Positions 10,743-64,000 of a DNA stretch of 64,000 nucleotides are shown piece after piece (position 1 is the first letter of the stretch; each line of letters begins with the position of its first letter). A program made the position numbers and the translations under genes. The notes under the pieces were generated by a model. That model saw nothing but the letters and a program-made list of their open reading frames with translations. It searched no databases and was not told the origin of the DNA. Origin of the DNA: Monocercomonoides exilis PA203 (lineage: Eukaryota > Protista > Preaxostyla); the NCBI GenBank assembly GCA_001643675.2, contig LSRY02000031.1, positions 1,116,001 to 1,180,000 on the forward strand. The letters run 5' to 3'.

Positions 10743-13700
10743 ATGATTCCCTTCATTTTACTTGTGTGTTTGTCCTCAATTGTTTGTGGCAAATACAGAA
10801 ACGACAAGCTGAGAAATGAATATGATCATTTCTATGTTCGTGGAATGGAGAAGCGTGGTATTTTTGTGAAGGGAAGTGTTGTTCGGATGTTCTGTGAAAT
10901 GCACAACTCGTCAGTTGAATTGAAGGGGATGTTGCTTGAAAAGCCAGATAATTGTGTGATGTTTGAAATAGGTGCAGGATCATTGCTGCAGGTTGAGGGA
11001 AGTGTGTTTGTGAGAAGCAATGAGTGGAATGGGAATTATGTGAGGAATGGAGGGACATGCTGGCTGATAAACACGACTTTGGGAATTGGGAATGGTCATA
11101 AATGTGGAATGATGGGGAGTGTGGTGAAGATGGAAGGGGGTGATTTGTCGATGTTGTTTGTGAGAAATAGTGAGTTTGAGGATGTTGTGTTTTGTGGGAA
11201 TGGATGCAGTTTTTTGAGAGATGGTTCAGGAAGTTTTGAATGCATTCAAAACTGTAGATTTGCGAATATCACAAAGAAATATTGTGAAATAGAGGAAATA
11301 CAAACTGGAAAAGAGAGGATAATGAAGATGAGCAAAATGGAGGATTGTGATGTTGAACGATCGATGAATGTGCTTGAAGGAGGGATTGTGAGTGGAACAG
11401 AAGGATCTGGTTCATTTTTGTGCAACAATTGCACATTTGTTCAGAATGAAAGAGTGGACCGGAGAGTTAGAAATACAGACAGACAGTCAACAACTCAAAC
11501 ACAGACATTTACGAACGCTGAATGGATTGGGTGCTCTGCTTCATGTGGTGGTGCACTATATGTTCATGACAATTCGAGTGCAACGCTGACAGTTGAGAAT
11601 TCGTCATTTGTGAAATGCAATGCAACATACGAAAGAGGAGGAGGGATATTTGCTTTGAACATTGGAGAATGCACTGTGAAACATTCCACGTTTGTTGAGT
11701 GCTATTGTGTGGCATCATCAAATAATGGAGGTGCTGGAATGGGAATTACAGGAATGACAATTCAAGTATTTGTTGATAATTGTCTTTTCAAAGACAATTG
11801 GTCTGGAAATGATGGTGGAGGATTGATAATTTTGAGTTCAAAGACAAACAAAACAAAAGATTGTGTATTGAATTGTTTATTTCAAAATTGCAGCGGAAAT
11901 AAGGCAGTGGATTCTGATGGAGGAGGTTATATTAGTTGGGGCGCAACAGATAAAGTTGTTGCTCATAGTTGTCTTTTTCAAGGATGTCATTCAGATTGGA
12001 GAGGAGGAGCCGTAAGTATCAGGACGGATGGATATAGTGGAAATCTTTTATGGTTTTGCTTTTTCAACAATAACACAGCACCATATGGCAATGACATTTA
12101 TGTTAACGATGACTCAACAAACTCCCAAGTTGCTTTCTGTTATTCCACAAGAACTGAAGGAGTTAGATATAATGCCAGTGGGAATGACAAAAGCAGCTGG
12201 CTTCCAAATGGAGGAAGAAGCAGATTTGTTGCTTCAAGAGAGAATCAGACAAATTCAAAAGACACATTCAGTTGTGGGTTGAATGAAAGTTGTGCATGTC
12301 TCACAATCAGCCATTGCCTTTCTCAAATGATTGTGGGATTTGTGGAGGAAATCAAGGTATTGAGTGGAACAGTTGTGGAAGGCAAAGGAGTTGACATTGG
12401 AGAGAAAACAATCTCTGTGAATGGGGCTTTGCCAGCTGGTTCAGCCATTGAAACAAAATTTGAGGGAAATGGATTGAGTCTGTTTTGTGTTGGAGCAGGG
12501 GAGTTGGTTGTGAGCGATCTGTCAGTGGTTCACAACACCTCATTTGAAAACAACAGGCAATGCAGACTGTTTGAGGTTGAGGGAAATGGGTTGATGGATG
12601 TGAAGAGAATGAATATTTCGATGGATTCAGCTCATTCAGAAGAGAGGCGCATTCAGAACTCACTTGTGAAAGTGGAAGGGGGAGAGTTGAAGATGCAAGA
12701 TGTGAGATGGGAACAAACATTCAGCACCAAGAGTGTGATATCACTTTCTCAAGAATCATCTGTGACATTGTCTCTGGATAACTGTGTGTTCAGCAACATT
12801 GTGAGAACAACAGCAGAATCATCGCTGATAAGTGTGGGTGAAGGGTTACATTCGATAACACTTGATGGATGCACAATTGATGGGTGTGGGAGTGAAGCCT
12901 CTGAGTTTGGAGGGGGAATGATGGCTGAAGTGGGAAGTGGGAGTTCATTGAATGTGAAAGGAGGCATTGTGAAGAACTGTTATGCCTCAGCCACTCAAGG
13001 GAGAGGAGGAGGGATTGGGCTGAAAGTGAAAGACACAAATACTAACTTTCTGATTTCATCAGGATTTGAAGGAAACAGGGCCAGATGGGGAAGTGATATT
13101 TTTGTTGACTCGATCGATCTGGAATCAACTGCAACAAGTGGGAAGATCACTTCATTGACTGCTTCATTGGAAACAAAGAGCAAGATGCAAGGATATGAAA
13201 ATGGGGATGAATCGTTCCCAATTCCACTGTGTATCTATTTGTGGAACAACTTTTCAGCACCAGCGTTTGTGGGAGGAGGATCATTGAGCCATGATTTTTC
13301 GAAGTGTGGATTTGAAGAGTTTCCGTGTTCATCCATTTTGAAGGCAGCCACAATCCACTTTGAAGGGGAGAAAAAGGACATTGCTCTTCTTGAGCCATTT
13401 GTCTTTGAGGAGGAATTGGGGTTGACTTCGAATGAATGGAGCATTGCATCCAAAGAGGATGAGATGAAATGCGATGTTTGTGATCAGAAAGAGGGAGCTC
13501 AAAGAGGATTGATTGAAAACACAGTTTCTGTGTCTGTAACTGGCATTGTATTTTCTTTGAAGAAATCGCTGACATTTCATGAAAGCGTGTTTGAGTGTCA
13601 TTCAGGGAAGCTCGCACTGAATGGATGTGGGATGGAAGGAGGCGCTGAGACTGTTTCGACAGTGTTTGTGAAGGCTGTTGGAGGGGTTGTGGAGGTGAGT

Positions 13701-16700
13701 GAGTTTGGATCAGAGAATATGAAAATTGGAGATTCATCGATATTTGTTGTTGAAGGGAATGATGAAAGTGTGCCTTCGATGAATATGACTCATTGTGATT
13801 TTTTGGAAATCACATTTGGTGATGGGAGTGTTGTCGAGTGCCACGAGGGGATTATAGAGAAGATATCAGGATGCACATTTTCATCGATCACTCGTTCAAA
13901 GGGAAGTGGAGGATGCATCAGCATTGTGAACAATGAGGATGATGATGATGAAAGAGATTTCAATGTGAAAATAAATGACTGCACATTTGAAGGGTGTGCT
14001 ATAACTGGAGAGGAGGGAACCGAGATTGGAGGAGGTGCACTCTTTTGTGAGGCATCTGCAAATACAAATCTTTTGATAAGTTTGTGTTCGTTTTATTGTT
14101 GCACAGCACCATACGAAGAGGGAAGTGTTGGATATGGAGGAGGAATAATGCTGAAGATGCTGAAAGAAGAAGCAATATATGTGATATCCTCACCAGTTTT
14201 TTCATCTGAGAAGCCGAACAATGCGAAATATGGGAAGGATCTGTTCATTTCATCTCCATCACTTGCCAAGAGTATCAAGAACGAAACACTTCCATTTGTG
14301 AAAGACAGACTGGAGTTGCTGACAGAAGACTCAATGAGGGGATATGATGGAGAAAACAAGGAGTGTGCAATCCCACTGATCTATTTCTGGAAATCGATCG
14401 GATCGAGCGTGCATATTGCAGAGGAAGGAAACAATGTGGTTGTGTGTGGCTTTCCAAATCTTCCGTGCCAATCTGTTGATTATGGGGTGAATCGTATCGG
14501 CAGTTCAGCAGTCGAGCAGATGATGATTCATAGGATTTGCTATGTGAGGAGTGTGACAGAGATGAATGGGATGAAGGTGGAAGGAACAAATATGGAATCA
14601 GACAAAATCCAATTTGCTCAAGCACTTGAAGGGAATGGAGATGCTGTTGTTGAATGCAAAGGGATTGTTCAATTCAAAGAAGTGGGAATGATGATTCACA
14701 GTTCCTTTGACAACGGAGAAAGCATCCTTATCCAGACAGGTTCAGAAGCAATCAAAACGAGTGTTATTGGATGCTCAATTCACACAATCGACAATGATGA
14801 AAGTGAGGTGTCATTTGTTCTGATCAGTGCCACAAAAGGAATTGTTTTGATTGAAAATACAGAAATAGCTGGATTCTTAACGATGCATGAGATAATGAGG
14901 ATATCAGCTGATTGTGTGACAACTATGAACAATGTGACGTTTGAAGATATTTCATTGAGCGGGAAAAGTGCAATTGCGATGAGTGAAAGTGTGATTCCTG
15001 GAAAAGGGAATGTTGATGAAGAAGAAATATGGAACATTCAATTTGATCAATGCACATTTGTGAATGTGAAGCACAATGTGTCAAGCAACCCCTCATTGCT
15101 TTGTTGTGATGTGACGAATGAAGTGAGATTGAAAATGGATAATTCGTCGATAAACAATTGTGGATCTACAAGCTCGAATGAAGGAGGAGGAGTGTTTTTC
15201 CTTCTCGATGAGAGGGGGAAACTGGAAGTGAATCACACAAATGTGATAGGGTGTTTCTGCTCGAATATTGGAAGAGGAGGAGGACTGTTTTTGAAATCAC
15301 AGAGTGTTGCACAGAAGGCATTGCCATTTGTGCTGTCGAACATCACATTCCTTCGGAATGTTGCATCGAAGGGGAGGGATGTGTTTGTGAAGTGCACAGA
15401 CCTTGATTTTCAGATAAGTGAGTCACAGTTCCTGATAAACTTTGGGGAGCCATTTGTGAGGGAGCTGGCGATATGGGGGTGCACAGCAGACAATTATGGG
15501 GATGAAGAGGATCTTCTGAGGAGGGTGTTTGTGTTCAGGAGCGAATTCATATTTGTTTCATCGATTGCGGAGAACAGCAGCGACAGCAAGCAGTGTGGGG
15601 AGATGAAGAGCACATGCTCATCGCTGAATGTTGGGGTGAGCCACATCATCCCATCGGACTATTCGCAGCTGTTTGTTTGGAATGAGACAGAATTGACTGG
15701 TTCATGCTCAGCTGAGAAGGTGACGATCAAGTCGATGGAGGCAAGCAGGAACGGGGAGATAAAAGTGAGAGAGATTGAGCTTGGGAATGAGGGAGCTGTG
15801 AGAACTTCGGAATCTGTTCGATTTGAGAAGGTATCATTTGTTTTTGGTGGAATGGGGAATGTTGTCTGCTCGTGCTTGATACACCAGCTGAATGGATCTC
15901 TCATTCTGGAATCCGTTTCATTCTTGTCAGAGAGCAGACCAACAGAGAATTCACAGACCCTTTTTGACTTTTCTCTGATTGTTGTTGAAGAAGGGTTGTT
16001 TGAGGCAGATCGATGCAGTGTTGTCCACTTGAGCTTCTCAAAGGCTGTATTTGAGATATTGCATTCAGAAAGGGCAACAATTGAGGATGTGGGAGTGGAT
16101 GATGTGGAATGCAAAAGTTCGTTGATTGAATGTGGGAAAAGTGAGAAAGTGAGCATTTCGAAGTTGGCAGCCTCAAACATTGACTTAGAAGAAAGGAGTC
16201 TGATCTCACTTGAAAACAGCCATCCATCACTCATTTTTTCATTGATAGTGTCATCATTCACAAACATCAGCCGATTATCATCTGGGTCTTGCATTGTTTG
16301 CACAAGTCAGCCGATGAGTGGATTTGAGATGTGCAACTGCTCTTTTCATGAGTGCACATCAGAGTCATCAAAGGGGAGCCAAGTGGCGATTGCATTGGCA
16401 GAGGAGATATTGATCGAATCGTGTATATTTGAGGGGAATCTTGCTTCAGGAACAGAAGGGAATGAGATCATTGATGAATTGTGCAAATGGAATGAATCAG
16501 TTGTTGACTTGTCAATGAGTGAAACAGTTGTGAGAGACACCACGATTTGCAACTCATCGAAGGGAGGGATGAGTGTGAGTGGAGGCACAATAATTATCAA
16601 AGATGGAAGATTTGAAAACAACAATCCTTCGATTGAGAATTACCCATCGGTCAGAAGAAACATTATTTGCTCAGATTCTGGAGCATTGAATGTTGTGAGT

Positions 16701-18503
16701 TTGAAAGGAGGAGATGGAGTGAAAGATAGCTCTTCTCTTTGGATTCTGAATGAGGGATGCAATTTAGAAGGAATTATTTCTGAAAGAGCATCTCCATTCT
16801 TCATTCCAGTGCTGGAGAGTGTTGAAACAAAGGAAGTGGGAGAAGAAGTGGAGATTGTGTTCAAAGGGAAGGAGCTGCTGCCATGCGACTTGTCATTCAT
16901 GGTTGTGAAGCAGATGGGAGAAGAAAAGCAGATTGAAAAATATGAGTTCGATGAGAGTGGATATGTGTCAGAGACCGAAGTTGAAGGGAGACTGCCAAAA
17001 GAGACGATAACGGAAGCAGGAGAAGGGGTGGAAGTGAGTGTGTGCATTCTGTTTGGGGATGGAAATAATCCATCATCAACTGATTCTTTCATCCTGAAGA
17101 ACAAGAGCGAATCAAAAACAAATGGAGAAGGAAAGCTTGCTGAAGGAGGAAAAGAAGGGAAATCGTATTTGTTGTTGATTGTTATTATCATGGCTTTTGT
17201 TCTTCTAATCATTCTGATTGTGGCAGTGATATTCATTGTTCGATGGAAGAAGGTCAAGAATGAAAACAAAGATCTGAAAGAGATTGTGAATGACACAGTG
17301 AAAAAGGATCCGAAACTGATTGAGATGGTGACGATGGAAATGTCACCTGAGGAACAGTGGAGGAGAGCTGAGAAAGATGCTGAGAAGAAGAATGAAGAGA
17401 GGATAAAGAAGAGAGTTTATGAGAAAAGCTTGGGACACTCAGAGTCATCAGAACATCTTTTGAGCGAGAGTGGATCAACTGAATACATCTTGGGAAGAGA
17501 TTCAGACAAGATTCCTGAATGGGCATTGGAGAAGGTTGAAGAAGAAGAGATTCGAAACAGAACGCCATCACCATCAGTATCTTCCACATGTTCAACTGAT
17601 TCAGATTCAACATTTGTTCGTGGTGAGGATCTGTGCCCGACCACTTCATCGATGTCAAACTTGGTGGATGCAATGGCCTGTTCATCACCTCATGAGAAGC
17701 TGATTGTGGATTTGAGGGATTCATTGTTCATGTTGTTGCATGGAAGGAACGAGAAGAAAGAGATGTCAATCGGCACTCTGCAGGAAAGGGAGATGACAGC
17801 TGCTCAGATCCTGTTCTGGGTTGCGAATGGAGCACTCCACTCATTTGACGAGATGGAAAACCCTCTTCAATCATTGAATAATCTGAGTCCTCACATTGTT
17901 TTGTTCTCGGAGCACATGGTTATCTGCATTGCCCTCCACTCCGATTGTTCATCAGGCTCCGACTCATCATCCATCTCTTCATTGAGCATTGTTTCTTCAT
18001 CCTCGAATATTTCAGTGATGAGTGAGAGATTCACCGACTCACCACCACCTTCATCAGCATTTGAGGATGAAAGTTTCAGAAAGGAGTGCCTAAGGTGGAA
18101 GGCACCTGAGCTGCAATTGAACAAGAAGATGGATGCTACGAAGGAGTCAGTGACTTTCTCGATTGGGATGATGTTGTGGGAGTGTGTGACGCTGGAGATC
18201 CCGTTTGGGGAGTATGAGGGAGTGGTGGCAGGGCAGAAGATAGTGGATGGGGAGAGACCAGACTTTTTGAAGACTGAAGGGAGCAATCTGGGTGGATTGA
18301 TCATTGCGTGCACTCGGACAGAAAGTGTGGATCGCATATCACTGGGAGATGTGAAGAGAGAGCTGATTGGGAACTTTCCACCAGGAGCAGCGATGCTCAC
18401 AATGACAGATGCATTGGGGCTGATGCAAGAGAGCGAAGGCAATGAAAGAGAATCCAAGGAAATTGGATCTGAAGACGAGTCTGAAAATATGAAAATTGAA
18501 TAA
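10743..18503 (+). CDS. Giant Cys-rich parallel beta-helix (polymorphic-membrane-protein-like) type I membrane receptor with C-terminal pseudokinase
   Basis: Uninterrupted 2586-aa ORF with a signal peptide (MIPFILLVCLSSIVCG) and repeated GGA(L/I/V)/GGG and FxxC/FxxN motifs. Four modules of about 350-380 aa each start with CGxxxxxC. A TM helix at about 17166-17240 is followed by RWKK. The C-terminus has kinase C-lobe motifs LRWKAPEL, VTFSIGMMLWEC and IPF...GERP, without HRD or DFG. Confidence 0.9.
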   Translation: MIPFILLVCLSSIVCGKYRNDKLRNEYDHFYVRGMEKRGIFVKGSVVRMFCEMHNSSVELKGMLLEKPDNCVMFEIGAGSLLQVEGSVFVRSNEWNGNYVRNGGTCWLINTTLGIGNGHKCGMMGSVVKMEGGDLSMLFVRNSEFEDVVFCGNGCSFLRDGSGSFECIQNCRFANITKKYCEIEEIQTGKERIMKMSKMEDCDVERSMNVLEGGIVSGTEGSGSFLCNNCTFVQNERVDRRVRNTDRQSTTQTQTFTNAEWIGCSASCGGALYVHDNSSATLTVENSSFVKCNATYERGGGIFALNIGECTVKHSTFVECYCVASSNNGGAGMGITGMTIQVFVDNCLFKDNWSGNDGGGLIILSSKTNKTKDCVLNCLFQNCSGNKAVDSDGGGYISWGATDKVVAHSCLFQGCHSDWRGGAVSIRTDGYSGNLLWFCFFNNNTAPYGNDIYVNDDSTNSQVAFCYSTRTEGVRYNASGNDKSSWLPNGGRSRFVASRENQTNSKDTFSCGLNESCACLTISHCLSQMIVGFVEEIKVLSGTVVEGKGVDIGEKTISVNGALPAGSAIETKFEGNGLSLFCVGAGELVVSDLSVVHNTSFENNRQCRLFEVEGNGLMDVKRMNISMDSAHSEERRIQNSLVKVEGGELKMQDVRWEQTFSTKSVISLSQESSVTLSLDNCVFSNIVRTTAESSLISVGEGLHSITLDGCTIDGCGSEASEFGGGMMAEVGSGSSLNVKGGIVKNCYASATQGRGGGIGLKVKDTNTNFLISSGFEGNRARWGSDIFVDSIDLESTATSGKITSLTASLETKSKMQGYENGDESFPIPLCIYLWNNFSAPAFVGGGSLSHDFSKCGFEEFPCSSILKAATIHFEGEKKDIALLEPFVFEEELGLTSNEWSIASKEDEMKCDVCDQKEGAQRGLIENTVSVSVTGIVFSLKKSLTFHESVFECHSGKLALNGCGMEGGAETVSTVFVKAVGGVVEVSEFGSENMKIGDSSIFVVEGNDESVPSMNMTHCDFLEITFGDGSVVECHEGIIEKISGCTFSSITRSKGSGGCISIVNNEDDDDERDFNVKINDCTFEGCAITGEEGTEIGGGALFCEASANTNLLISLCSFYCCTAPYEEGSVGYGGGIMLKMLKEEAIYVISSPVFSSEKPNNAKYGKDLFISSPSLAKSIKNETLPFVKDRLELLTEDSMRGYDGENKECAIPLIYFWKSIGSSVHIAEEGNNVVVCGFPNLPCQSVDYGVNRIGSSAVEQMMIHRICYVRSVTEMNGMKVEGTNMESDKIQFAQALEGNGDAVVECKGIVQFKEVGMMIHSSFDNGESILIQTGSEAIKTSVIGCSIHTIDNDESEVSFVLISATKGIVLIENTEIAGFLTMHEIMRISADCVTTMNNVTFEDISLSGKSAIAMSESVIPGKGNVDEEEIWNIQFDQCTFVNVKHNVSSNPSLLCCDVTNEVRLKMDNSSINNCGSTSSNEGGGVFFLLDERGKLEVNHTNVIGCFCSNIGRGGGLFLKSQSVAQKALPFVLSNITFLRNVASKGRDVFVKCTDLDFQISESQFLINFGEPFVRELAIWGCTADNYGDEEDLLRRVFVFRSEFIFVSSIAENSSDSKQCGEMKSTCSSLNVGVSHIIPSDYSQLFVWNETELTGSCSAEKVTIKSMEASRNGEIKVREIELGNEGAVRTSESVRFEKVSFVFGGMGNVVCSCLIHQLNGSLILESVSFLSESRPTENSQTLFDFSLIVVEEGLFEADRCSVVHLSFSKAVFEILHSERATIEDVGVDDVECKSSLIECGKSEKVSISKLAASNIDLEERSLISLENSHPSLIFSLIVSSFTNISRLSSGSCIVCTSQPMSGFEMCNCSFHECTSESSKGSQVAIALAEEILIESCIFEGNLASGTEGNEIIDELCKWNESVVDLSMSETVVRDTTICNSSKGGMSVSGGTIIIKDGRFENNNPSIENYPSVRRNIICSDSGALNVVSLKGGDGVKDSSSLWILNEGCNLEGIISERASPFFIPVLESVETKEVGEEVEIVFKGKELLPCDLSFMVVKQMGEEKQIEKYEFDESGYVSETEVEGRLPKETITEAGEGVEVSVCILFGDGNNPSSTDSFILKNKSESKTNGEGKLAEGGKEGKSYLLLIVIIMAFVLLIILIVAVIFIVRWKKVKNENKDLKEIVNDTVKKDPKLIEMVTMEMSPEEQWRRAEKDAEKKNEERIKKRVYEKSLGHSESSEHLLSESGSTEYILGRDSDKIPEWALEKVEEEEIRNRTPSPSVSSTCSTDSDSTFVRGEDLCPTTSSMSNLVDAMACSSPHEKLIVDLRDSLFMLLHGRNEKKEMSIGTLQEREMTAAQILFWVANGALHSFDEMENPLQSLNNLSPHIVLFSEHMVICIALHSDCSSGSDSSSISSLSIVSSSSNISVMSERFTDSPPPSSAFEDESFRKECLRWKAPELQLNKKMDATKESVTFSIGMMLWECVTLEIPFGEYEGVVAGQKIVDGERPDFLKTEGSNLGGLIIACTRTESVDRISLGDVKRELIGNFPPGAAMLTMTDALGLMQESEGNERESKEIGSEDESENMKIE

Positions 18504-55700: not shown

Positions 55701-58700
55701 ATGCTTGTGCGAACTTCAATACTCACGATCAAGTTGTTGTTTGTGATTTCTTTGTGTTGTTCCGAAAAGGGCACAAGCAGCAACAAATTCCAAGGGGTTA
55801 GAGAATATTCTTCAAAATTCAAGTTTCGATTTGAAGATGATGCAGAGAAGCACAGCATCACCAAACGCAGCTTGGAAAATAGTTTTTCTCAGGTGTGGGT
55901 TCCATGTAGAAACTCAACAAGCGTCCTCAGTTCGAAGTGTGAAAAATGGATGAAAATGCGATCAACGGTTTTATCCTGCATGAAAATGAAAAACACAAGC
56001 GCGAATTTAAAAGAATTGGAATTCCGCCAATATGTTGATTTGAGTGTGATAGAAATGGATGGATGCGAAAAAGTGATTTTGTTTTCATGTGTTTTGAAAC
56101 AGAACGGGAAAAGTGGAGCGAGTGAATTTATTGTGAACAATGGCGAGTTTTATCTTCAAAATGTGAAGATGGAACTGGATGAGCAGAATATGATTCAACA
56201 CTCGATTGTTTCAGGAGGCGGTGAAAAGGCAGGATTTCTTCTGAGAAGAGGTGCATATTTTGATGGTTGCTGTGCTTCATCGATATGTGTTTGCTCTCCA
56301 TCTCCATTTTTGTGCAGCGAGAAGCTGGAGATGGCAGAGGTGACGGATTGCCTTTTCTGCAACATCACAACGCACCACAACGGGAAAGGGTGTTGCGACA
56401 GGACGTTACAGAGAAGCGTTGTGGAGAACTGTGAAATAGAGGGATGCGAGGATGTGTTTGGGGGGAGGATAGTGAGTGGCGCGAGAGGAAATGAGTTTTC
56501 TGCACGAAATACAACATTCTGCAGAATGACAAGTGCCCACCATGATTCGCATTACACCACGCCCTTTGACGAGTTCACAACAGGAGAAGTCTCGTTTGTG
56601 AACTGCGATTTCGAAAACTGCAGAAGCACAAGCCACGGAGGAGGGGCGATCTGTGTCGGAGGAACAGCCTCACTGTCTGTTCAGAGGTGCACATTCACCA
56701 ATGTTTCAACAACAGTTGGCAGAGGAGGAGCAATCAACAGCTATTCGACAAGTTCTGTTGAAATAAATGGAGCAAGTTTCACAAGATGCTCGAGTGATGG
56801 TTTCTTTGGTGGTGCTTTAGCAGCTATTAATTCATCTTTGTCCATGGGTTTATGTATTTTTGAGCAGTGTTCATCTTCATATGGAGGTGCCATTAATGTG
56901 GAATATCAAAGTTATCTCAGAATTATTGGCACAAATTTTTATAACTGCAAAGCAACAAATCAATGTGGAGGAGCTGCTCATTTGTTCTGTCCATTTGAAA
57001 CAGTAAACTTTCTGGAAAACGAGCTTATCTTTTGCTCATCTGTAACACCGGGAGGAGGAATTGACATATATGATAACACAAGAAAGAAAAATGTTTCATT
57101 TAAGCATTGCTTATTTATATGTAATGAAGTTTTCGGTAATAACAAATATGGCTTTGATGTTTATTTTGGAGATGGATTTTCTTCAATGGTAACTTCAGAA
57201 TGGATAACTGATTCATATTCAATATCCAATAAAACAAAAAGAATATGTTTGTGCAATTTTTATTCATTCGCTTGCGAAAATCCAACATTCCATGATGAAT
57301 GGTTGCCAGTGAGTTCTTCCGAAATGAACAGGATTATTCTTGTGGATGTGAAGCAAAGCACAACAGAATCCACAGGCGATTATTACCTGTGTGGGGCTGT
57401 GTCGCATGAATGCAAGACACTGAAATACGGTGTATCAAGATGGGTGGATTGGCATCATGAGCTGATCAGGGTGCGAGGGGGAACATACGAGGAGAGCGAG
57501 ATGGTGATTGCGCAGATGAATGTTATGATAGAGCCGAACAAAGACGAAAATGAGGAGGAGGAGACAGTGACAGTTGTGACGAATGCAGTTGGGCATGCGA
57601 TGTTTGAAGTGGAGAGTGGATCGATGCAGATGGCTGGGATGATCCTGAAGCACACCATTTCGAATGAATGCCAGCAGGCGTTGCTGGAGATGAGCGGCAA
57701 AGGATCAGAAGTGAGCTTTCTGAGGTGCGAGATCATGTCTGCAGCGACAAGTGCGGTTGGGCAGCATTCGTATTTTGGAGTGAAAGCTGGAAAGATGAAG
57801 ATGGCGCAATGCACAGTGAAGAACATCGAGCTGGAGAATTGTGGGGTGATTGAGTGGGGGAATGGGGGGATGGTGGAGATGGATGGAAGCAACTTCTCTA
57901 ATATCACGCGCAGAGAAGGAAACGGGGCAGTTGTTGGGAAGAATGGGGGAGCAACAGAGAAAGTGTGGATTCAGAACATCAGCGTGAAAGACTGTGTGTG
58001 TCAGAAAGGGAACGGTGGGGGAATTGAGGTGGTGGTGGAGAATGGGTGTGATTGTGGAATTGGGGGAGCAGGGATGGAGGCAGGATTTGAGAGATGCAGA
58101 GCAGAAGAAGGAAGTGGAAGTGGAAGCAGAAGTGAGACAACAAATGAAAAAACGAGCGGAGGTGGAAACAGGAATGAGGCAGAGGAGGGGAGGAGAGGAT
58201 GTGGAGGAGGGATATGTGTGAGAGTGTTGGGAGAGGAAGCAGGGTTCAAGATTGGGGCTATTCAATTTTCCGGAAACAGTGCAGCACACGGGGAGGATGT
58301 GTGTGTGTTTGCTCCGCATCTGGAGAAGGTTGTGACAAGGACAAGCTTTGGATATTACTCTGAGAGAGGGGAGTTCAGTATTGAGAGTGCAGAGGGGATG
58401 AATGACGGATTGCGTGGAGTGTGGGTGCCGCTGGTGTTCTATCTGAGAAGCAGAGAAGGGAATGTGTCAGTGGGAGAAGATGGGACAGATGTGAGGCCCT
58501 GCGGGTTTTCGGAGTATCGGTGTCTGAGCGTGGGATATGCACTTGGACAGCAGTCAGATTGCCACCAGGTGCTGGTGTGGGGAAGCTATCAGCTGAACGA
58601 GAGCCTTGTGCTGGATGATGAGAAGGGATATGTGTGGAGCGGGACAGAAGACATGAGCAAGATGAGGATGGTGGGGAGCAGCATGGGAGTGAACGGGATT

Positions 58701-61700
58701 ATTGAAGTGAAGACGAGCGCCAGACTGAAGAAGTTGAGCATGACGGTTGGAGGGGCTCTGCCATCGACACAGCGAAGTGTGATTATTGTGAGCAATGCGA
58801 GAGCCAGCTGTGTGATTCAAGATTCGTGGATTGGCCCGGAAAGCAGCGTTGGGGAGATTGGGTTTTCGATATTGGTTGTCGAAGCAGGGCAATGCACAGC
58901 ATCGGGCATTACTTTCGAGAAACTGGAGTTTAGTGATCGGGCGATGATTGGATGCTCAGGATCTGGGTCAAAGCTGATCATGAGTACTGTGAGGATTGAG
59001 AATGTGAAATGCAGGAACACAAACGGAGTGATGAATGTGGATGCGTCAGCAGAGCTGACTCTGAGCAACACGACAGTATTGGGGATGGAAAATGGAGGCA
59101 ACAGCGAGTCTGTGATTATTGGAAACCGAGCTCGGCTGGTGATGATAAGCGGGGTGAGTGTGAGTGGTGTTGGGTTGGAAGCAGGAAACGGCGGGGTGGT
59201 GAAAGGAACAATCGGGAGCGGACAGAGGCTGTGTGTGGAAAACAGCAGTGTGAATGGGGAGTGCATGAAAGGGAATGGTGGAGGGATGGAGCTGAGGCTG
59301 GAGAAAGGAGGAGTGGTTGAGATTGGGATGAGTGAGAATGTGGCATTTGCGGGATGTCGGGCTGTTGCTGCGGCAGGAGCCGGAGGGTTTGGAGGAGGGA
59401 TGCATGTTGTGCTTGCTGGTACAGCAGATGATTTTGTGGTGAAGAAAGCAGAGTTCACAGGATGCAGCGCAAGCAGGAAGGGGAGCGGGATGTTTGTGAA
59501 GGCGCCTCTGCTGTCAAAAGTGATCAACAGCACAACAATCGGGTTTGGGCCTGACCTTGGGGATGAAGAAGGGCTTGCTGGGGTTGAAGGGGGCGATGAG
59601 TCGTTTTATGTGCCGTTGGTGCTGTATCTGCGGGGAGAACCAGATGTGGTTGCAGTTGGAGGAGGGAATGCGAAGGATTTTGATCGGTGTGGGTATTCGG
59701 GCTATCCGTGCCAGACAATGGATTTCGCATTGGACAGGTGGCAGCAAGACAGAGGTTTGACATGTGTGGTCGACAGGTCGACGAGTCTGTCATGCGAGGT
59801 TGGTTTTCGAAAGGGGAGGTTCAGCATTGAAGGGAAAGAGCAGAAAGCGGTATTTGTGGTGAATGAGAACTCGGAAAAGGCTCAAGAAGGGATGATTGAG
59901 CAGAGTGCAGAAGAGACCAACATGAGCAGGATGGAGTTTAGTATGCCACAGCAACTGAATGGCCGAGTGGCGCTGGCAAAGTGCATTGAAGGGTTGATGA
60001 GGGTTATGGAGTGCAGTGTGAGTGTTCGGCTGTCGACGAACATTGAGTTTTCAGTTTTTGTTGTTTCAGGAGGAGAACTTGGGCTAGTGGGTTTTAGGGT
60101 TGATGATGTGATGTTTTCAGGAGGATGGATGGTGAGGGTGATGGGGATGGGAATTGGATCAATGAAGGGATGCGAGGTCATTGATGTGCAGAGCGCAGAA
60201 AGCAAGGAATTATTAGAAGTGAGGGATGGAGGGGTGATGAGAGTGGAGAACACAACTATGGAAGGTGTGGCGGATAGTTTTGGATCGGCAATAAGTGACA
60301 AGAAAGGAAAGGAGGTTTCAGTGAAGAACAGTTCTATATGTGGGATGTGGAAGGCAGAAGGGAATGGAGGGATGATAGAAGGAGAAATAGAAAATGGAAT
60401 GAGGATTGAAGTGAGTGGGGTGAGGGTGAGGAACTGTGGAAGCAAAGCGGGATGTGGCGGGGGGATGAGGATTGTTTTGAAGGGGAGTGGAGAGTTTGAG
60501 TGCAGCAAAATGGAGGGGTTGAGTGAAGAGGAAATGAGGATTGCGGAGTGTGGGGCAGAAGGGAGTGGAGCGAACGAAGGGTGCGGAGGAGGATTGATGA
60601 TTGAGTGTGTGGAAGGAGGAAGTGGCTTCGCCTTGAAGAGTGTAGTGTTTGGAGTTGGAGAGGAAGAAAACAAAGCGAGCAGGGGAGGGAAGAATGTGTT
60701 TGTGAAAGGAGAAGGTCTTCGGGGGCTTGTGAATGTGGAATCATTTGGGTTTGAGTTCATGAAGGAGGTTGGGGGAACAGACCTGAAGGAGTTAGAAGGA
60801 TGCGAGGATGGCTTGGAAGGGATAGTGATTCCGCTGGTAATGCTGTTTCGAGAGGCGCCGGAGCGATGCTATGTGGGCGAAGATGGAGAAGACACATACG
60901 AATGTGGATTCAAGGATTATATGTGCGAAACAATAGAATACGGGGCAGAGCAGCGTTTTGGTGGGAAGAAAGCAATGATGAGGCTGGACAGGTCGTTTGT
61001 GATAAGAAATCGGATAGTGGTTACTGAGCAGGAGATGGAAGTTGATGGGGAAGTGAACGGGTCAGTGATTGCAGTTGAAGGAAGCAAAGGGGATTCAGGA
61101 GATGGAGTGATTCTGATTGAGAATGCAGCAGTATTTACTGGCCTTCAGTTTTCTGTTGGAGAGCTGTCTGATGTGCCACGAAAGTGCCTGTTTGAGTGCA
61201 GTGGAGGGGAGTTGGCCCTGACAGATTGCTCGATTAACGCTCAGTCAGGAGAAGGCTTGGGAATGGTTGAATGTGCGAATGGAGGAAAAGTGAATGTCAT
61301 GAGACTTCGACTTTGCGATGTGGAATTAGGATCGGTGGGAGCAATTGAGGTGAAGGGAAACGGGAGCACAGGAGTTATTGAGTGGAGTGTCTTTGAAGAT
61401 GTTAAGACGAGAGGAAAGGAAGGGGTGATAGTTGCGGAAGAGGGTGGACATGTGGAAGTGATGAACAGTTCAGTGAATTGGTCTTCATTTGGGGACAACA
61501 GTGGTGTGCATGTCAGCGAAGGAGCATCAGGGATAATTGTAAAGTGCAACATGAGCGAGCTGAGGAGGGAAAACAGGGATGGAGGAGGAGTGAGTGGGGT
61601 TGCAGGAGATGGAAAGAAGATAGAGGTGAGAGAATGCGAGTTTTTTGATGTGAAGTGCTTGAGAGATATGGGAAAAGGAGGGAGTGTGAGTGTGAGAGTG

Positions 61701-64000
61701 AGGGGAGGAGGAGCACTGGAGTTTGAGGGGAATAGCGTTGGAAAGAGCATGGTGAATGAAGAAAGCGGCGTTGGAGGAGGGGTGTATGTGAAGTTTGATT
61801 CGGAGGAAGGGGTGTACTGGATGAGATACGACAGATTTGAGGAGAACAAGGCGAGTGTGGGAAGAGATGTGTATTTTGAGTGTGTGGGTGCAAGCAAGAT
61901 GTTGAAGCAGATGCGATGGGTGGACACGGCTGATGAGGACGAAGAGGAGGAAGAGAAGCAGCGGCTGTGGGTGTATGACAGGAGCAACGAGCCAGTAATC
62001 AATGTGACGATGTTTGCGTTTCTGTTTCCGGCTGGTGCAGACATACTGTTTGTGGATAAAGGCGGGACCAATTTTGAGGAGTGCGGAATACAGGCAACGC
62101 CGTGCAAAGATGTGTCGTTTGGGTTTGAGAAGCTGGGAAGCACGCGAACAACGATACGGATTGTGGAATCGGCAGCTGGGAAGAGCGAGATGAGACAGAA
62201 GGATGAATCGTTGACTCTGCAAGGGAAGAACAAAGCCGAAGTTGCAACTGTTCTTCGGATGGAAGAAAATGGGGGCTTTGTTGTTGAGGGGAGCAGAAAG
62301 ATGGAGCTGAGTGTCCAAAGACTGCAGGTGGTTGTCTGTGTTTCTTGGGCGAAAGAAGCTGTGTTTGGAGTTGGAGGAAAGGGGGCAGTTTCTGTGCAGA
62401 ATTGTTCAATCTGCGGAGAATTGGGATCAACTTTAAGTGGAGTGGGGAATGGATGGATTGGGAAAGGAAGTGGAGGGGAGATAAGTTTTGTATCGGTGAA
62501 TTTTGAGCAAATGGAATTGGGAGCAGGATGCGGAGTGGCAGAGATGAAAGATGGAAAACTAATTGTGGAGAAGTCTAACATGAGTGGGCTGTGCGGGAGC
62601 GTGGGAGGGTTGATCTGCGGGAGGGGAGAGAGCGATGTGAGTATTCGGGAGACAAATGTGAAGGGATGCAGAGTGTTCGGTGGAAGTGTGGCAAGAATGA
62701 GTGGTGTGTCGCAGATAAAGGTGTGGCAGGGAAGTTTGATTGAAGAGTGCAGGTCCGATGAGAACATGGATGGAGGTGGGATGTGGTGTGAGCTTGTTGG
62801 AGAAAGCGAGGTGATGATAGAGGATTGCAGGTTTTGCAAGTGCATGCTGACGAAAGATAATGGAAGAGGGGGAGGAGTGTTTTTGGATTTGCAAGAGAGT
62901 GCAAGCAATAATTTTGCGTTCAAAAGAGTGACATTTGAGGGGAACACAGGAGCCAAAGGAGAAGATGTGTTTGTTGTGAGCAAATCCTTGAATGAATCGA
63001 TCATAGCAGATCGCTTTGTTGATGTATCTGGGGCTGAGGAGGGTTCTGTCCGGGCAAAGATTGCAGGAATAGACAGTGAGTTTTTTGTGGAAGAGGCGAT
63101 TGATCTGTATGAGTTTCTTGTTGAGCGCAGGTTGGGAGAGATCAGAGTTGGAGAGAAAGGATACGACTTTGCAGGGTGTGGAACAGACAAGTATCAGTGC
63201 AAAACACTATGGAGAGGATACAGAAACATTGATGGATTGGCAGCGAAAAAGAGGCTGTTGATGGATGGAGAAGTGTATGCAGAAGAAAGCTACGATCTTT
63301 CATCATTTGAAGTGAGTTCGATGCAGGACCAGGAGGAGTCTTGTGTTCGGATTCAATTGAAAAATGGAGAAGGGGTGAACGAATGTGTGTTTGGATCGTC
63401 CACAGTGCTGGAGATGAAGTGGATTGTGTTCAAATATGAGGAGTCATTGGAAGCGGGAGCGGGATGTTTGGTGTATTCCAGTGGCAGCAAGCTGACTTTG
63501 AATCGAAGCCGATTTGAGAATATGACAAGAGGAAATGTGAAGGTGACGTTGGTGAAGTGTTCGAGTGGAGTAGTGATGATGGAAGAATGCGAAGTGTTGT
63601 GCCAGGAGTTTGAGAGTGTTCCGTTTGCGCTTTGGAGCGGAGCGGAAATAGAAGGGTGTGTATTTGATGGTTTGAGAACGCGAAAGAGCATGAAAGGTGG
63701 GGCGATATATGCAGTGCTTGGAAAGGATGGGGTGTTGAAGATGGAAAACAACACGATAGCGAGAAGTGAGTGCTCGAGGAGCGCAGGGAGAGGAGGAGGG
63801 GTGTATGTGGACAGTTTGGAGAGTGAAGCTGAAAAGCCATTTGAGTTTTGCAGAGTGCTGAAACTGGAAGGGAACGAAGCAGCAAGAGGGAAGAACATGT
63901 TCATTGCAGGCAAAGACCTGAATAAAAGTGTGAACAGAGCATCGTTTGGGTTTGAGTATGAGTTAGCTTTGGAAGACAGGAATCTGTTTGCAGGAAGAGA
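55701..64000 (+). CDS. Giant Cys-rich beta-helix surface protein, same family as 10743-18503 (3'-partial, >2700 aa, runs off window)
   Basis: ATG 55701 starts MLVRTSILTIKLLFVISLCCS (signal-like). The same frame reads as family sequence wherever checked, up to the window end (...ELALEDRNLFAGR), and the ORF track has no stop-terminated ORF in this frame. It has GGA(I)/GGG motifs and CGxxxxxC module starts at about 57388, 58500, 59688, 60903, 62082 and 63177. Confidence 0.9.
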   Translation, partial: MLVRTSILTIKLLFVISLCCSEKGTSSNKFQGVREYSSKFKFRFEDDAEKHSITKRSLENSFSQVWVPCRNSTSVLSSKCEKWMKMRSTVLSCMKMKNTSANLKELEFRQYVDLSVIEMDGCEKVILFSCVLKQNGKSGASEFIVNNGEFYLQNVKMELDEQNMIQHSIVSGGGEKAGFLLRRGAYFDGCCASSICVCSPSPFLCSEKLEMAEVTDCLFCNITTHHNGKGCCDRTLQRSVVENCEIEGCEDVFGGRIVSGARGNEFSARNTTFCRMTSAHHDSHYTTPFDEFTTGEVSFVNCDFENCRSTSHGGGAICVGGTASLSVQRCTFTNVSTTVGRGGAINSYSTSSVEINGASFTRCSSDGFFGGALAAINSSLSMGLCIFEQCSSSYGGAINVEYQSYLRIIGTNFYNCKATNQCGGAAHLFCPFETVNFLENELIFCSSVTPGGGIDIYDNTRKKNVSFKHCLFICNEVFGNNKYGFDVYFGDGFSSMVTSEWITDSYSISNKTKRICLCNFYSFACENPTFHDEWLPVSSSEMNRIILVDVKQSTTESTGDYYLCGAVSHECKTLKYGVSRWVDWHHELIRVRGGTYEESEMVIAQMNVMIEPNKDENEEEETVTVVTNAVGHAMFEVESGSMQMAGMILKHTISNECQQALLEMSGKGSEVSFLRCEIMSAATSAVGQHSYFGVKAGKMKMAQCTVKNIELENCGVIEWGNGGMVEMDGSNFSNITRREGNGAVVGKNGGATEKVWIQNISVKDCVCQKGNGGGIEVVVENGCDCGIGGAGMEAGFERCRAEEGSGSGSRSETTNEKTSGGGNRNEAEEGRRGCGGGICVRVLGEEAGFKIGAIQFSGNSAAHGEDVCVFAPHLEKVVTRTSFGYYSERGEFSIESAEGMNDGLRGVWVPLVFYLRSREGNVSVGEDGTDVRPCGFSEYRCLSVGYALGQQSDCHQVLVWGSYQLNESLVLDDEKGYVWSGTEDMSKMRMVGSSMGVNGIIEVKTSARLKKLSMTVGGALPSTQRSVIIVSNARASCVIQDSWIGPESSVGEIGFSILVVEAGQCTASGITFEKLEFSDRAMIGCSGSGSKLIMSTVRIENVKCRNTNGVMNVDASAELTLSNTTVLGMENGGNSESVIIGNRARLVMISGVSVSGVGLEAGNGGVVKGTIGSGQRLCVENSSVNGECMKGNGGGMELRLEKGGVVEIGMSENVAFAGCRAVAAAGAGGFGGGMHVVLAGTADDFVVKKAEFTGCSASRKGSGMFVKAPLLSKVINSTTIGFGPDLGDEEGLAGVEGGDESFYVPLVLYLRGEPDVVAVGGGNAKDFDRCGYSGYPCQTMDFALDRWQQDRGLTCVVDRSTSLSCEVGFRKGRFSIEGKEQKAVFVVNENSEKAQEGMIEQSAEETNMSRMEFSMPQQLNGRVALAKCIEGLMRVMECSVSVRLSTNIEFSVFVVSGGELGLVGFRVDDVMFSGGWMVRVMGMGIGSMKGCEVIDVQSAESKELLEVRDGGVMRVENTTMEGVADSFGSAISDKKGKEVSVKNSSICGMWKAEGNGGMIEGEIENGMRIEVSGVRVRNCGSKAGCGGGMRIVLKGSGEFECSKMEGLSEEEMRIAECGAEGSGANEGCGGGLMIECVEGGSGFALKSVVFGVGEEENKASRGGKNVFVKGEGLRGLVNVESFGFEFMKEVGGTDLKELEGCEDGLEGIVIPLVMLFREAPERCYVGEDGEDTYECGFKDYMCETIEYGAEQRFGGKKAMMRLDRSFVIRNRIVVTEQEMEVDGEVNGSVIAVEGSKGDSGDGVILIENAAVFTGLQFSVGELSDVPRKCLFECSGGELALTDCSINAQSGEGLGMVECANGGKVNVMRLRLCDVELGSVGAIEVKGNGSTGVIEWSVFEDVKTRGKEGVIVAEEGGHVEVMNSSVNWSSFGDNSGVHVSEGASGIIVKCNMSELRRENRDGGGVSGVAGDGKKIEVRECEFFDVKCLRDMGKGGSVSVRVRGGGALEFEGNSVGKSMVNEESGVGGGVYVKFDSEEGVYWMRYDRFEENKASVGRDVYFECVGASKMLKQMRWVDTADEDEEEEEKQRLWVYDRSNEPVINVTMFAFLFPAGADILFVDKGGTNFEECGIQATPCKDVSFGFEKLGSTRTTIRIVESAAGKSEMRQKDESLTLQGKNKAEVATVLRMEENGGFVVEGSRKMELSVQRLQVVVCVSWAKEAVFGVGGKGAVSVQNCSICGELGSTLSGVGNGWIGKGSGGEISFVSVNFEQMELGAGCGVAEMKDGKLIVEKSNMSGLCGSVGGLICGRGESDVSIRETNVKGCRVFGGSVARMSGVSQIKVWQGSLIEECRSDENMDGGGMWCELVGESEVMIEDCRFCKCMLTKDNGRGGGVFLDLQESASNNFAFKRVTFEGNTGAKGEDVFVVSKSLNESIIADRFVDVSGAEEGSVRAKIAGIDSEFFVEEAIDLYEFLVERRLGEIRVGEKGYDFAGCGTDKYQCKTLWRGYRNIDGLAAKKRLLMDGEVYAEESYDLSSFEVSSMQDQEESCVRIQLKNGEGVNECVFGSSTVLEMKWIVFKYEESLEAGAGCLVYSSGSKLTLNRSRFENMTRGNVKVTLVKCSSGVVMMEECEVLCQEFESVPFALWSGAEIEGCVFDGLRTRKSMKGGAIYAVLGKDGVLKMENNTIARSECSRSAGRGGGVYVDSLESEAEKPFEFCRVLKLEGNEAARGKNMFIAGKDLNKSVNRASFGFEYELALEDRNLFAGR

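Follow-up and report, generated by a model that had tools for sequence, protein, structure and literature searches.

What sets the outer end of a giant receptor apart from the rest of its gene? The question is raised by a window of 64,000 nucleotides (nt) from Monocercomonoides exilis PA203, positions 1,116,001-1,180,000 of contig 27 (C27) in the 82.3-Mb genome of 101 contigs that we searched; "the window" means this whole stretch. It carries two giant receptor-like genes, here called gene A and gene B. In both of them an AT-rich segment between two conserved anchors had been singled out, in what we call the original prediction, as a hypervariable ligand-binding tip. We refer to the domain containing this segment as the head and to the modules that follow it as the stalk. 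The answer that we favour, with a probability of roughly 0.55, is that the head is a variable region whose old diversity has been shuffled between gene copies by ordinary paralogue recombination. The features on which the argument turns are listed here, GC3 being the G+C content of third codon positions (GC1 and GC2 likewise for first and second positions).

Positions 10743 to 18503, + strand: gene A, complete, 2586 amino acids (aa), with signal peptide, ectodomain, transmembrane helix and kinase-like tail
Positions 55701 to 64000, + strand, continuing past the window: gene B, 3908 aa, with signal peptide, beta-helix ectodomain, one transmembrane helix and cytoplasmic tail
Positions 56361 to 57350, + strand: head domain of gene B, modelled as a right-handed parallel beta-helix of GGA/F..C coils
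Positions 56421 to 56519, + strand: upstream anchor VENCEIEGCEDVFGGRIVSGARGNEFSARNTTF (VENCEIEG...ARNTTF), conserved across subfamilies
Positions 57300 to 57308, + strand: downstream anchor WLP, the end of the head domain, of the GC3 trough and of the divergent block
Positions 57351 to 58850, + strand: first stalk module, also beta-helical, GC3 0.5-0.7

The evidence that carries this answer comes from the closest paralogue of gene B, which lies on contig 64 and is called C64. Gene B and C64 are about 98% identical over more than 12 kb, with about two differences per 100 nt from 55749 onward, except in one block:

Positions 56972 to 57293, + strand: divergent block between gene B and C64, 114 differences in about 330 nt (35%), no gaps, flanks about 2%

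The borders of the block are knife-edged. Its first difference is at 56972 and its last at 57291-57293, two codons ahead of WLP, and the differences per 100 nt across 56949-57348 number 33, 32, 32 and 16, in a gap-free alignment. In the block, the proportions of differing synonymous (pS) and nonsynonymous (pN) sites are 0.66 and 0.26, and the corresponding distances are dS 1.6 and dN 0.31, with dN/dS of about 0.2. In the flanks pS and dS are 0.03-0.05, so that silent divergence is about 35-fold higher in the block. The differences are distributed over codon positions 1, 2 and 3 as 32:25:57, and the scaffold residues are conserved. Thus the proposal that the head has a history different from that of the rest of its gene is borne out by this pair, as it is by the incongruent trees of head and stalk described below.

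RNA-library contigs from an independent 2024 study are colinear with gene B over 55717-57849 with 0 differences. The mosaic in gene B therefore cannot be put down to chimeric assembly, and transcription of gene B is probable. The same contigs, together with the open frame, rule out an intron in the head segment, as the original prediction had stated. Its other descriptive points were exact on recheck: the anchors, the 260 codons between the upstream anchor at 56421-56519 and WLP at 57300, and the GC counts of 13/60 at 57061, 29/60 at 56401 and 33/60 at 58021. Gene A has the homologous anchors (MEDCDVERS...NNCTF at 11337 and WLP at 12198), which enclose 253 codons. Only the scaffold is common to the two genes between the anchors, as had been noticed; they are 25% identical there, and the shared columns are those of GGA and F..C.

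The head also stands out from its immediate flanks in two other subfamilies. Our whole-gene nucleotide analyses cover the first 3-4 kb of 27 + 16 copies, plus the full B/C64 pair. In the subfamily of the copies L007, L013, L025 and L029, a head block of 630 nt is 25-47% divergent, with flanks at 3-8%. The gene A subfamily shows the following peak:

Positions 11733 to 12183, + strand: divergence peak of the gene A subfamily (16 copies), mean pairwise nt divergence 0.22-0.28

This peak coincides with a GC3 of 0.18-0.28. Outside the head, divergence in the 4 kb compared is mostly 0.06-0.19, with three other patches at 0.22-0.28 (11283, 11463 and 14493). Taken across 100 close pairs, pS is 0.35 and pN 0.16 for the head, and pS 0.27 and pN 0.085 for the stalk. 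The head may thus be called hypervariable relative to its immediate flanks, but not relative to the whole gene. The first ~140 residues are as variable as the head (pN 0.18, dN/dS 0.5-0.6), and in the full-length gene A subfamily stalk residues 864-1000, 1254-1450 and 1728-1924 are more variable than the head, strong conservation being limited to the cytoplasmic tail. Of the picture of a distal domain on a constant stalk, the first half stands, because the head is a discrete N-terminal beta-helix domain and hence membrane-distal; the stalk is not constant. A separate observation concerns the region upstream of the block in gene B and C64 (55752-56969, the N-terminal 400 codons), where pN is 0.028 and pS 0.032. 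This ratio of about 0.9, against about 0.25 in the 3' 2,200 codons, indicates that the upstream region is near-neutral or adaptive in this pair.

Several observations bear on the age of the variation. While flank distances range from 0.03 to 0.25, head distance stays level at about 0.15-0.21 instead of rising in proportion. The share of variable sites with singletons only is 0.29 in the head of the gene A subfamily vs 0.46-0.48 in its flanks, and in class I it is about equal in head (0.20) and stalk (0.22). Multi-allelic sites are commoner in the head in both sets. DNA contigs of 2016 and 2022 and RNA contigs of 2024 carry the same block, with no alternative letters in these contigs, which hide rare variants. 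We therefore favour the view that the head variation is old and filtered by selection. The few private variants, the signatures of purifying selection and the unchanged contigs disfavour localized AT-biased hypermutation, which had been put forward as one of three possible causes. Nor does the block resemble the product of a diversity-generating retroelement: only three places in the genome match it, there is no template repeat, and 34 of the 114 differences do not involve adenine. Nothing indicates programmed switching, and the suggestion of an immune-receptor-like or variant-antigen-like system gained no support on this point.

Maximum-likelihood trees of head, stalk and N-terminus from 20 genes each reject the topologies of the other regions (approximately unbiased test, p ≤ 7e-6), so that the tip and stalk trees are incongruent, in line with what had been anticipated. 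A test resembling the pairwise homoplasy index (PHI) was significant in head, N-terminus and stalk of class I and in three of four regions of the gene A subfamily, the first stalk segment giving p 0.13. Together, these results indicate that recombination between paralogues is widespread and not confined to the anchors; the breakpoints that had been expected at the anchors dissolve into a signal running throughout head, N-terminus and stalk. The PHI-like signal in the head is as strong as that outside, which lends no support to the head as a recombination cold spot. In L029, the flanks and the upstream intergenic DNA are L013-like, and the first half of the head is closest to L025.

In the explanation that we favour, ectopic recombination or gene conversion among paralogues would keep most of each gene similar within its subfamily, and head segments would retain or import deeply diverged variants, which would yield sharply bounded mosaic blocks. 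Neither a dedicated mutator nor a programmed switch would be required. Superimposed on this is a second trait, found family-wide: the silent sites of the head are as poor in G+C as non-coding DNA or poorer still (GC3 ~0.2), with the rest of the gene enriched in G/C-ending codons. This bias works on DNA or RNA and not by way of amino-acid content. We infer an origin of the blocks in recombination combined with selection for diversity, and a ligand-binding role for the head. Cassette exchange, as the original prediction called one of its three causes, fits best among them if it is taken as patchwise exchange or retention by paralogue recombination; no donor cassette for the window heads goes with it.

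The assembly contains no donor for either window head. Besides gene B itself, only an inverted, near-identical copy at the end of the contig carries the gene B block; the next nearest relative is the C64 block at 55% aa identity, and all else is at 37% or below. For the gene A head the best match has 83% aa identity, and its matches are mostly full-length genes. The orphan tip-only donor cassettes that had been envisaged were thus found genome-wide for neither head. The inverted copy comprises the gene B head and first stalk module and lies at C27:1198174-1199392, about 19 kb past the window end. With 0-1 mismatches and a frame broken by a few indels of 1-2 nt, it may stem from a fold-back error in the assembly or from an inverted duplication of very recent date. 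Fragments at C27:1199122-1199391, considered as an orphan donor, were rejected because they are the end of this copy. Block variants showed no significant excess of shared 12-16-mers with about 200 kb of family DNA, as short templated patches would leave. Head-only open reading frames (ORFs) do exist in arrays on C42 (about 125-700 kb), C80, C71 and C53; there are dozens of them, 430-750 aa long, and they often form inverted pairs that score identically. They share 75-88% identity with each other and with the heads of full-length genes in their own subfamily, but have no relationship to the two window heads.

Several points weigh against our reading. The gene B block has no donor in the assembly, and past the stop the AT-rich 3' non-coding flanks of gene B and C64 still agree at 97-98% over at least 820 nt. 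Similarity that extends into non-coding DNA looks like a recent segmental duplication, in which case the block needs a donor. The heads of L013 and L029 differ at 18% of nt (pS 0.36), vs about 7.5% in the alignable intergenic DNA upstream, and simple escape from homogenization is therefore insufficient. Part of the B/C64 pattern may be decay, since each gene carries one lesion: an in-frame TAA inside the block of C64 (L002:2241-2243) and a 1-nt frameshift in the tail of gene B. These lesions may be real decay or long-read errors. As for selection for diversity, the average dN/dS of the head is about 0.38-0.5, which means that the dN/dS comparison called for in the original prediction gave no pervasive positive selection; a site-wise parsimony count found only two candidate codons in each region. 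Finally, the GC3 trough is uncorrelated with variability (rho -0.13 and +0.15), and the favoured model leaves it unexplained.

The trough is as clear a property of the head as its variation. In the two genes of the window it has these limits:

Positions 56700 to 57299, + strand: GC3 trough of gene B, the lowest 200-codon window of the gene, 0.225 vs a gene mean of 0.491
Positions 11700 to 12299, + strand: GC3 trough of gene A, 0.245 vs a gene mean of 0.418, at a position homologous to the trough of gene B

As a null, synonymous codons were shuffled within each amino acid over whole genes (1000 shuffles, 200-codon windows). None of the 1000 shuffles reached 0.225 in gene B (z -8.5, 3908 codons) or 0.245 in gene A (z -5.5). 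The deepest windows of both genes end at about the WLP anchor. Along gene B, GC3 declines from about 0.55 to 0.18-0.27 within 56691-57320 and then recovers to 0.55-0.67, and GC1 and GC2 do not drop. The drop predicted across paralogues is present in all 27 aligned copies, which come from several subfamilies and are only 25-35% identical to gene B in the head domain; their mean GC3 is 0.16-0.31 over gene B residues 314-523 and 0.40-0.50 on either side. Short head-only ORFs of another subfamily have a weaker trough in the homologous domain. An overlapping antisense ORF or a known RNA in the head was not found. In the oxymonad Streblomastix strix, two homologues match the head only at repeat level and at many positions. 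The large S. strix proteins are built of the same GGA-type coils along their whole length, which indicates that the repeat type predates the split of M. exilis and S. strix.

Amino-acid composition had been named as the explanation that would undo the AT dip, and it is ruled out by the synonymous shuffles and by the GC3 of single amino acids. Under stalk codon usage the head would have a GC3 of 0.425, and 0.238 is observed. For sixteen of the 18 tabulated amino acids the head has a lower GC3 than the stalk (Gly 0.14 in the head and 0.38 in the stalk, Ala 0.13 and 0.32, Phe 0.11 and 0.35, Glu 0.13 and 0.46), Gln and Asp being exceptions against the N-terminal region, and ranking the amino acids by GC3 gives one order for both domains. 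Third positions of the head (A.34, C.15, G.09, T.42) come near the non-coding DNA of the window (GC 0.23-0.34). Four-fold sites of the head, derived from the per-amino-acid table, have about 0.18 GC, vs 0.26-0.34 in non-coding DNA. The stalk and housekeeping genes are enriched in G/C-ending codons, above all G-ending ones; among the housekeeping genes in the window, an AAA ATPase has a GC3 of 0.54. Third-position G is 0.268 in the scaffold vs 0.093 in the head, and C is 0.191 vs 0.145. Conserved and variable head columns are alike in GC3 (0.27 vs 0.28), and the variable, free columns have GC1/GC2 of 0.40/0.35 against 0.48/0.45. As a side observation, the coding strand of the stalk (57300-64000 and paralogue stalks) is rich in G over C, with a GC skew of 0.4-0.8 and third-position G of 0.27-0.36, which produces a spurious antisense ORF of 649 aa at 61241-63190.

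Since silent sites are saturated between subfamilies, an inherited composition could not have persisted, and the trough must be actively maintained. It is not a by-product of variability or of silent-site divergence: local divergence and GC3 in windows of the gene A family are uncorrelated (rho -0.13; ectodomain 0.04), and so are silent-site divergence and GC3 in class I (rho +0.15). Codon usage specific to the fold is ruled out as well, because the first stalk module is also a beta-helix and has a high GC3. In profile the trough forms a U, with shoulders that slope gradually over about 100 codons and its centre at the variable zone; this shape, together with the effect at all codon positions, suggests a bias towards weak (W; A/T) over strong (S; G/C) bases in DNA or RNA. 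The cause may be a local deficit of GC-biased gene conversion, AT-biased mutation, or selection for AT-rich mRNA over the domain that folds first.

The best placed of the alternatives to our reading, itself an unlikely one, is differential GC-biased gene conversion. Conversion tracts would start in the conserved scaffold and fade on entering the diverged head, so that the scaffold would be homogenized and driven towards G/C, and the head would decay towards A/T and keep its old variants. A single putative process would then account for both trough and block. The gradual, U-shaped trough centred on the variable zone has the form expected, but local divergence and GC3 do not correlate, and GC3 stays at 0.4-0.47 in the N-terminal region, which varies as strongly as the head, and in the variable stalk patch at 14493. 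Exclusion from such conversion had been the third cause offered by the original prediction, and the correlation tests lent it no support. Knife edges would be expected where homology stops; the recombination signal within the head is, however, as strong as outside. The composition itself is also two-sided. Nearly all amino acids are shifted with their rank order kept, the low GC1 and GC2 of variable columns point to a W/S bias at the DNA level, and third positions of the head are close to non-coding DNA. The scaffold excess, on the other hand, is mostly in third-position G and not C, where a symmetric W-to-S bias predicts otherwise.

Rather less credible is selection on the mRNA, with the variability of the head as a separate matter. 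A/T-ending codons and weak RNA structure over the first beta-helix entering the endoplasmic reticulum would slow or smooth translation while the nucleus of the solenoid folds. It agrees with this that the trough is tied to the domain and not to position or variability, and turns up again, in weaker form, in short head-only paralogues of other subfamilies; yet the stalk modules are beta-helices too and have high GC3, and the edges of the trough are gradual, not domain-sharp. Silent sites change freely with only their composition held, and conserved and variable columns share the trough, both as selection of this kind would have it, but codon-level selection predicts no lowering of GC1 and GC2, which is seen in unconstrained head columns. 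Housekeeping genes use G/C-ending codons, so A/T-ending ones may be slow.

More doubtful again is the idea that the head is marked at the DNA level for diversification, its conserved AT-rich composition over about 600 bp being a preferred site of breakage, error-prone repair or patch exchange. If this were true, M. exilis would be a protist with germline-encoded, composition-targeted diversification of a ligand-binding tip in hundreds of receptors, with the GC3 trough as footprint or signal of the diversification process. Very improbable is a hypermutation directed at the head and biased towards A/T, which would create both divergence and AT richness and be a protist counterpart of somatic hypermutation or of diversity-generating elements: it could draw on the ~35-fold excess of silent divergence in the B/C64 block, the lack of a genomic donor for either block variant, the L013/L029 head more diverged than neighbouring intergenic DNA, the AT pressure at all codon positions of free columns and four-fold sites more AT-rich than non-coding DNA, but the block has a dN/dS of 0.2 despite a stop codon in one partner, so that most changes were filtered during a long time of function, private variants are rarer in the head than in its flanks and shared or multi-allelic ones commoner, head distance does not scale with that of the flanks, the knife-edged borders are unlike a decay with distance from the promoter, there is no third copy resembling a template repeat and no adenine-specific change, and contigs of 2016, 2022 and 2024 are unchanged.

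The family to which these genes belong is large. TKL (tyrosine kinase-like) kinases are the largest gene family of M. exilis, with 332 members (PMC6759080). The genome papers record the giant-gene family only as "protein tyrosine kinases" of the TKL group, and the TKL family overlaps the "unclassified repeats" of the published genome description (PMC6759080, PMC8767320). In the literature on M. exilis we found nothing that links the organism to gene conversion, hypervariability, beta-helices, Pmp or receptor kinases. Judged by their sequences, genes A and B encode giant type-I receptor-like proteins of this TKL-like family. Both show the family architecture of signal peptide, beta-helix ectodomain, single transmembrane helix and kinase-like tail, the tail of gene B being cut by the frameshift. 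The head protein matches 83 M. exilis MONOS_* proteins (E down to 8e-189), most of which carry PF07714, and the homologous annotated MONOS_ proteins with PF07714 are 2,400-3,000 aa long. In the genome, at least 110-150 head matches were scored, from 1,173-1,585 first-look candidates per query, and about 70 of the at least 110 sit in open frames of 2,500-4,200 aa.

With the next 5 kb added, gene B stops at the equivalent coordinate 67425, after a 1-nt insertion relative to C64. The insertion is in a C-rich run at about equivalent coordinate 67318 and truncates the kinase-like tail, through which the C64 frame runs on. The kinase-like tail of gene A has a Pkinase match at E 0.1 and, on reading of its sequence, no recognisable catalytic motifs. 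At least 14 copies of the gene A subfamily lie on C27 between 152 kb and 939 kb, with 84-90% nt identity over the first 4 kb, and form a large chromosomal cluster. In some paralogues an insertion of about 1.2 kb, one extra module, is placed at window positions 13206-13241 (gene A residue about 822), where DNA matches break at query 2494-2499.

The modelled fold of the head is a right-handed parallel beta-helix like that of Pmp (AlphaFold2; predicted local distance difference test 81, predicted template modelling score 0.84). The Foldseek matches listed for it are overwhelmingly beta-helices or beta-solenoids, such as capsule depolymerases, polysaccharide lyases of family 6, tailspikes and the PfbA adhesin, with a probability of up to 0.99 but a template modelling score of only 0.2-0.39; those of the first stalk module are similar.

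M. exilis is a model eukaryote without mitochondria, and "tyrosine kinases" is the only label under which its largest gene family is on record. This family consists of giant receptors whose outermost domain carries old, patchwise-shuffled variation, which suggests that a gut commensal has a broad repertoire for recognizing bacteria, host surfaces or other cells. That the trough is conserved across subfamilies with saturated silent sites means that some ongoing force must maintain it, and the nature of this force, whether GC-biased gene conversion, mutation bias or translational selection, bears on base composition within genes. What is new here is a GC3 trough that is tied to one domain throughout the family, an ancient block with knife-edged borders in a 12-kb pair of 98% identity, and the tests against a mutator.

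Chlamydial polymorphic membrane proteins (Pmp) have GGA(I,L,V)/FxxN repeats that form the coils of a beta-helix (PMC11166332). The M. exilis proteins resemble them in coils of about 25 residues with GGA and F..C/N motifs and in forming large paralogous families of surface proteins, and the distant bacterial matches to the M. exilis head carry PF02415. In contrast to Pmp, they are eukaryotic type-I proteins with a transmembrane helix and kinase-like tail and lack the C-terminal beta-barrel of an autotransporter; Pfam Pmp profiles gave no match at E up to 0.1, and TIGR01376 reached E 0.13 and 12.1 bits vs a cut-off of 15.

With Plasmodium var, trypanosome VSG, Anaplasma msp2 and Borrelia vlsE they share a variable exposed region within more conserved flanks, mosaic junctions, incongruent trees and, in the M. 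exilis genome, arrays of truncated head-only copies. Genes A and B, however, show no sign of a single expression site, of switching or of donors, the sequence is stable in the data of 2016 to 2024, and the M. exilis genes are receptor-like with a signalling-type tail, in a commensal flagellate. Codon bias reportedly differs between the hypervariable and framework parts of immunoglobulin V genes, according to Wagner, Milstein and Neuberger in 1995, and in M. exilis too the variable part of a coding sequence departs systematically from the remainder in its synonymous codon usage. The V-gene bias places mutator hotspots, whereas that of M. exilis is a uniform A/T shift over about 200 codons, with no mutator indicated.

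Plant S-locus receptor kinases, leucine-rich repeat (LRR) receptor-like kinases and R genes are similar in having an ectodomain, a transmembrane helix and a kinase-like tail, in their large clustered families, and in variable ectodomain patches that adjoin sequence homogenized by gene conversion. The M. exilis ectodomain differs from theirs in being a chain of beta-helices, not LRR or S-domain, and its tail has no recognisable catalytic motifs. By analogy, the functionally closest counterparts of the M. exilis family would be receptor-kinase families with variable ectodomain patches, together with antigen families that are diversified by segmental gene conversion.

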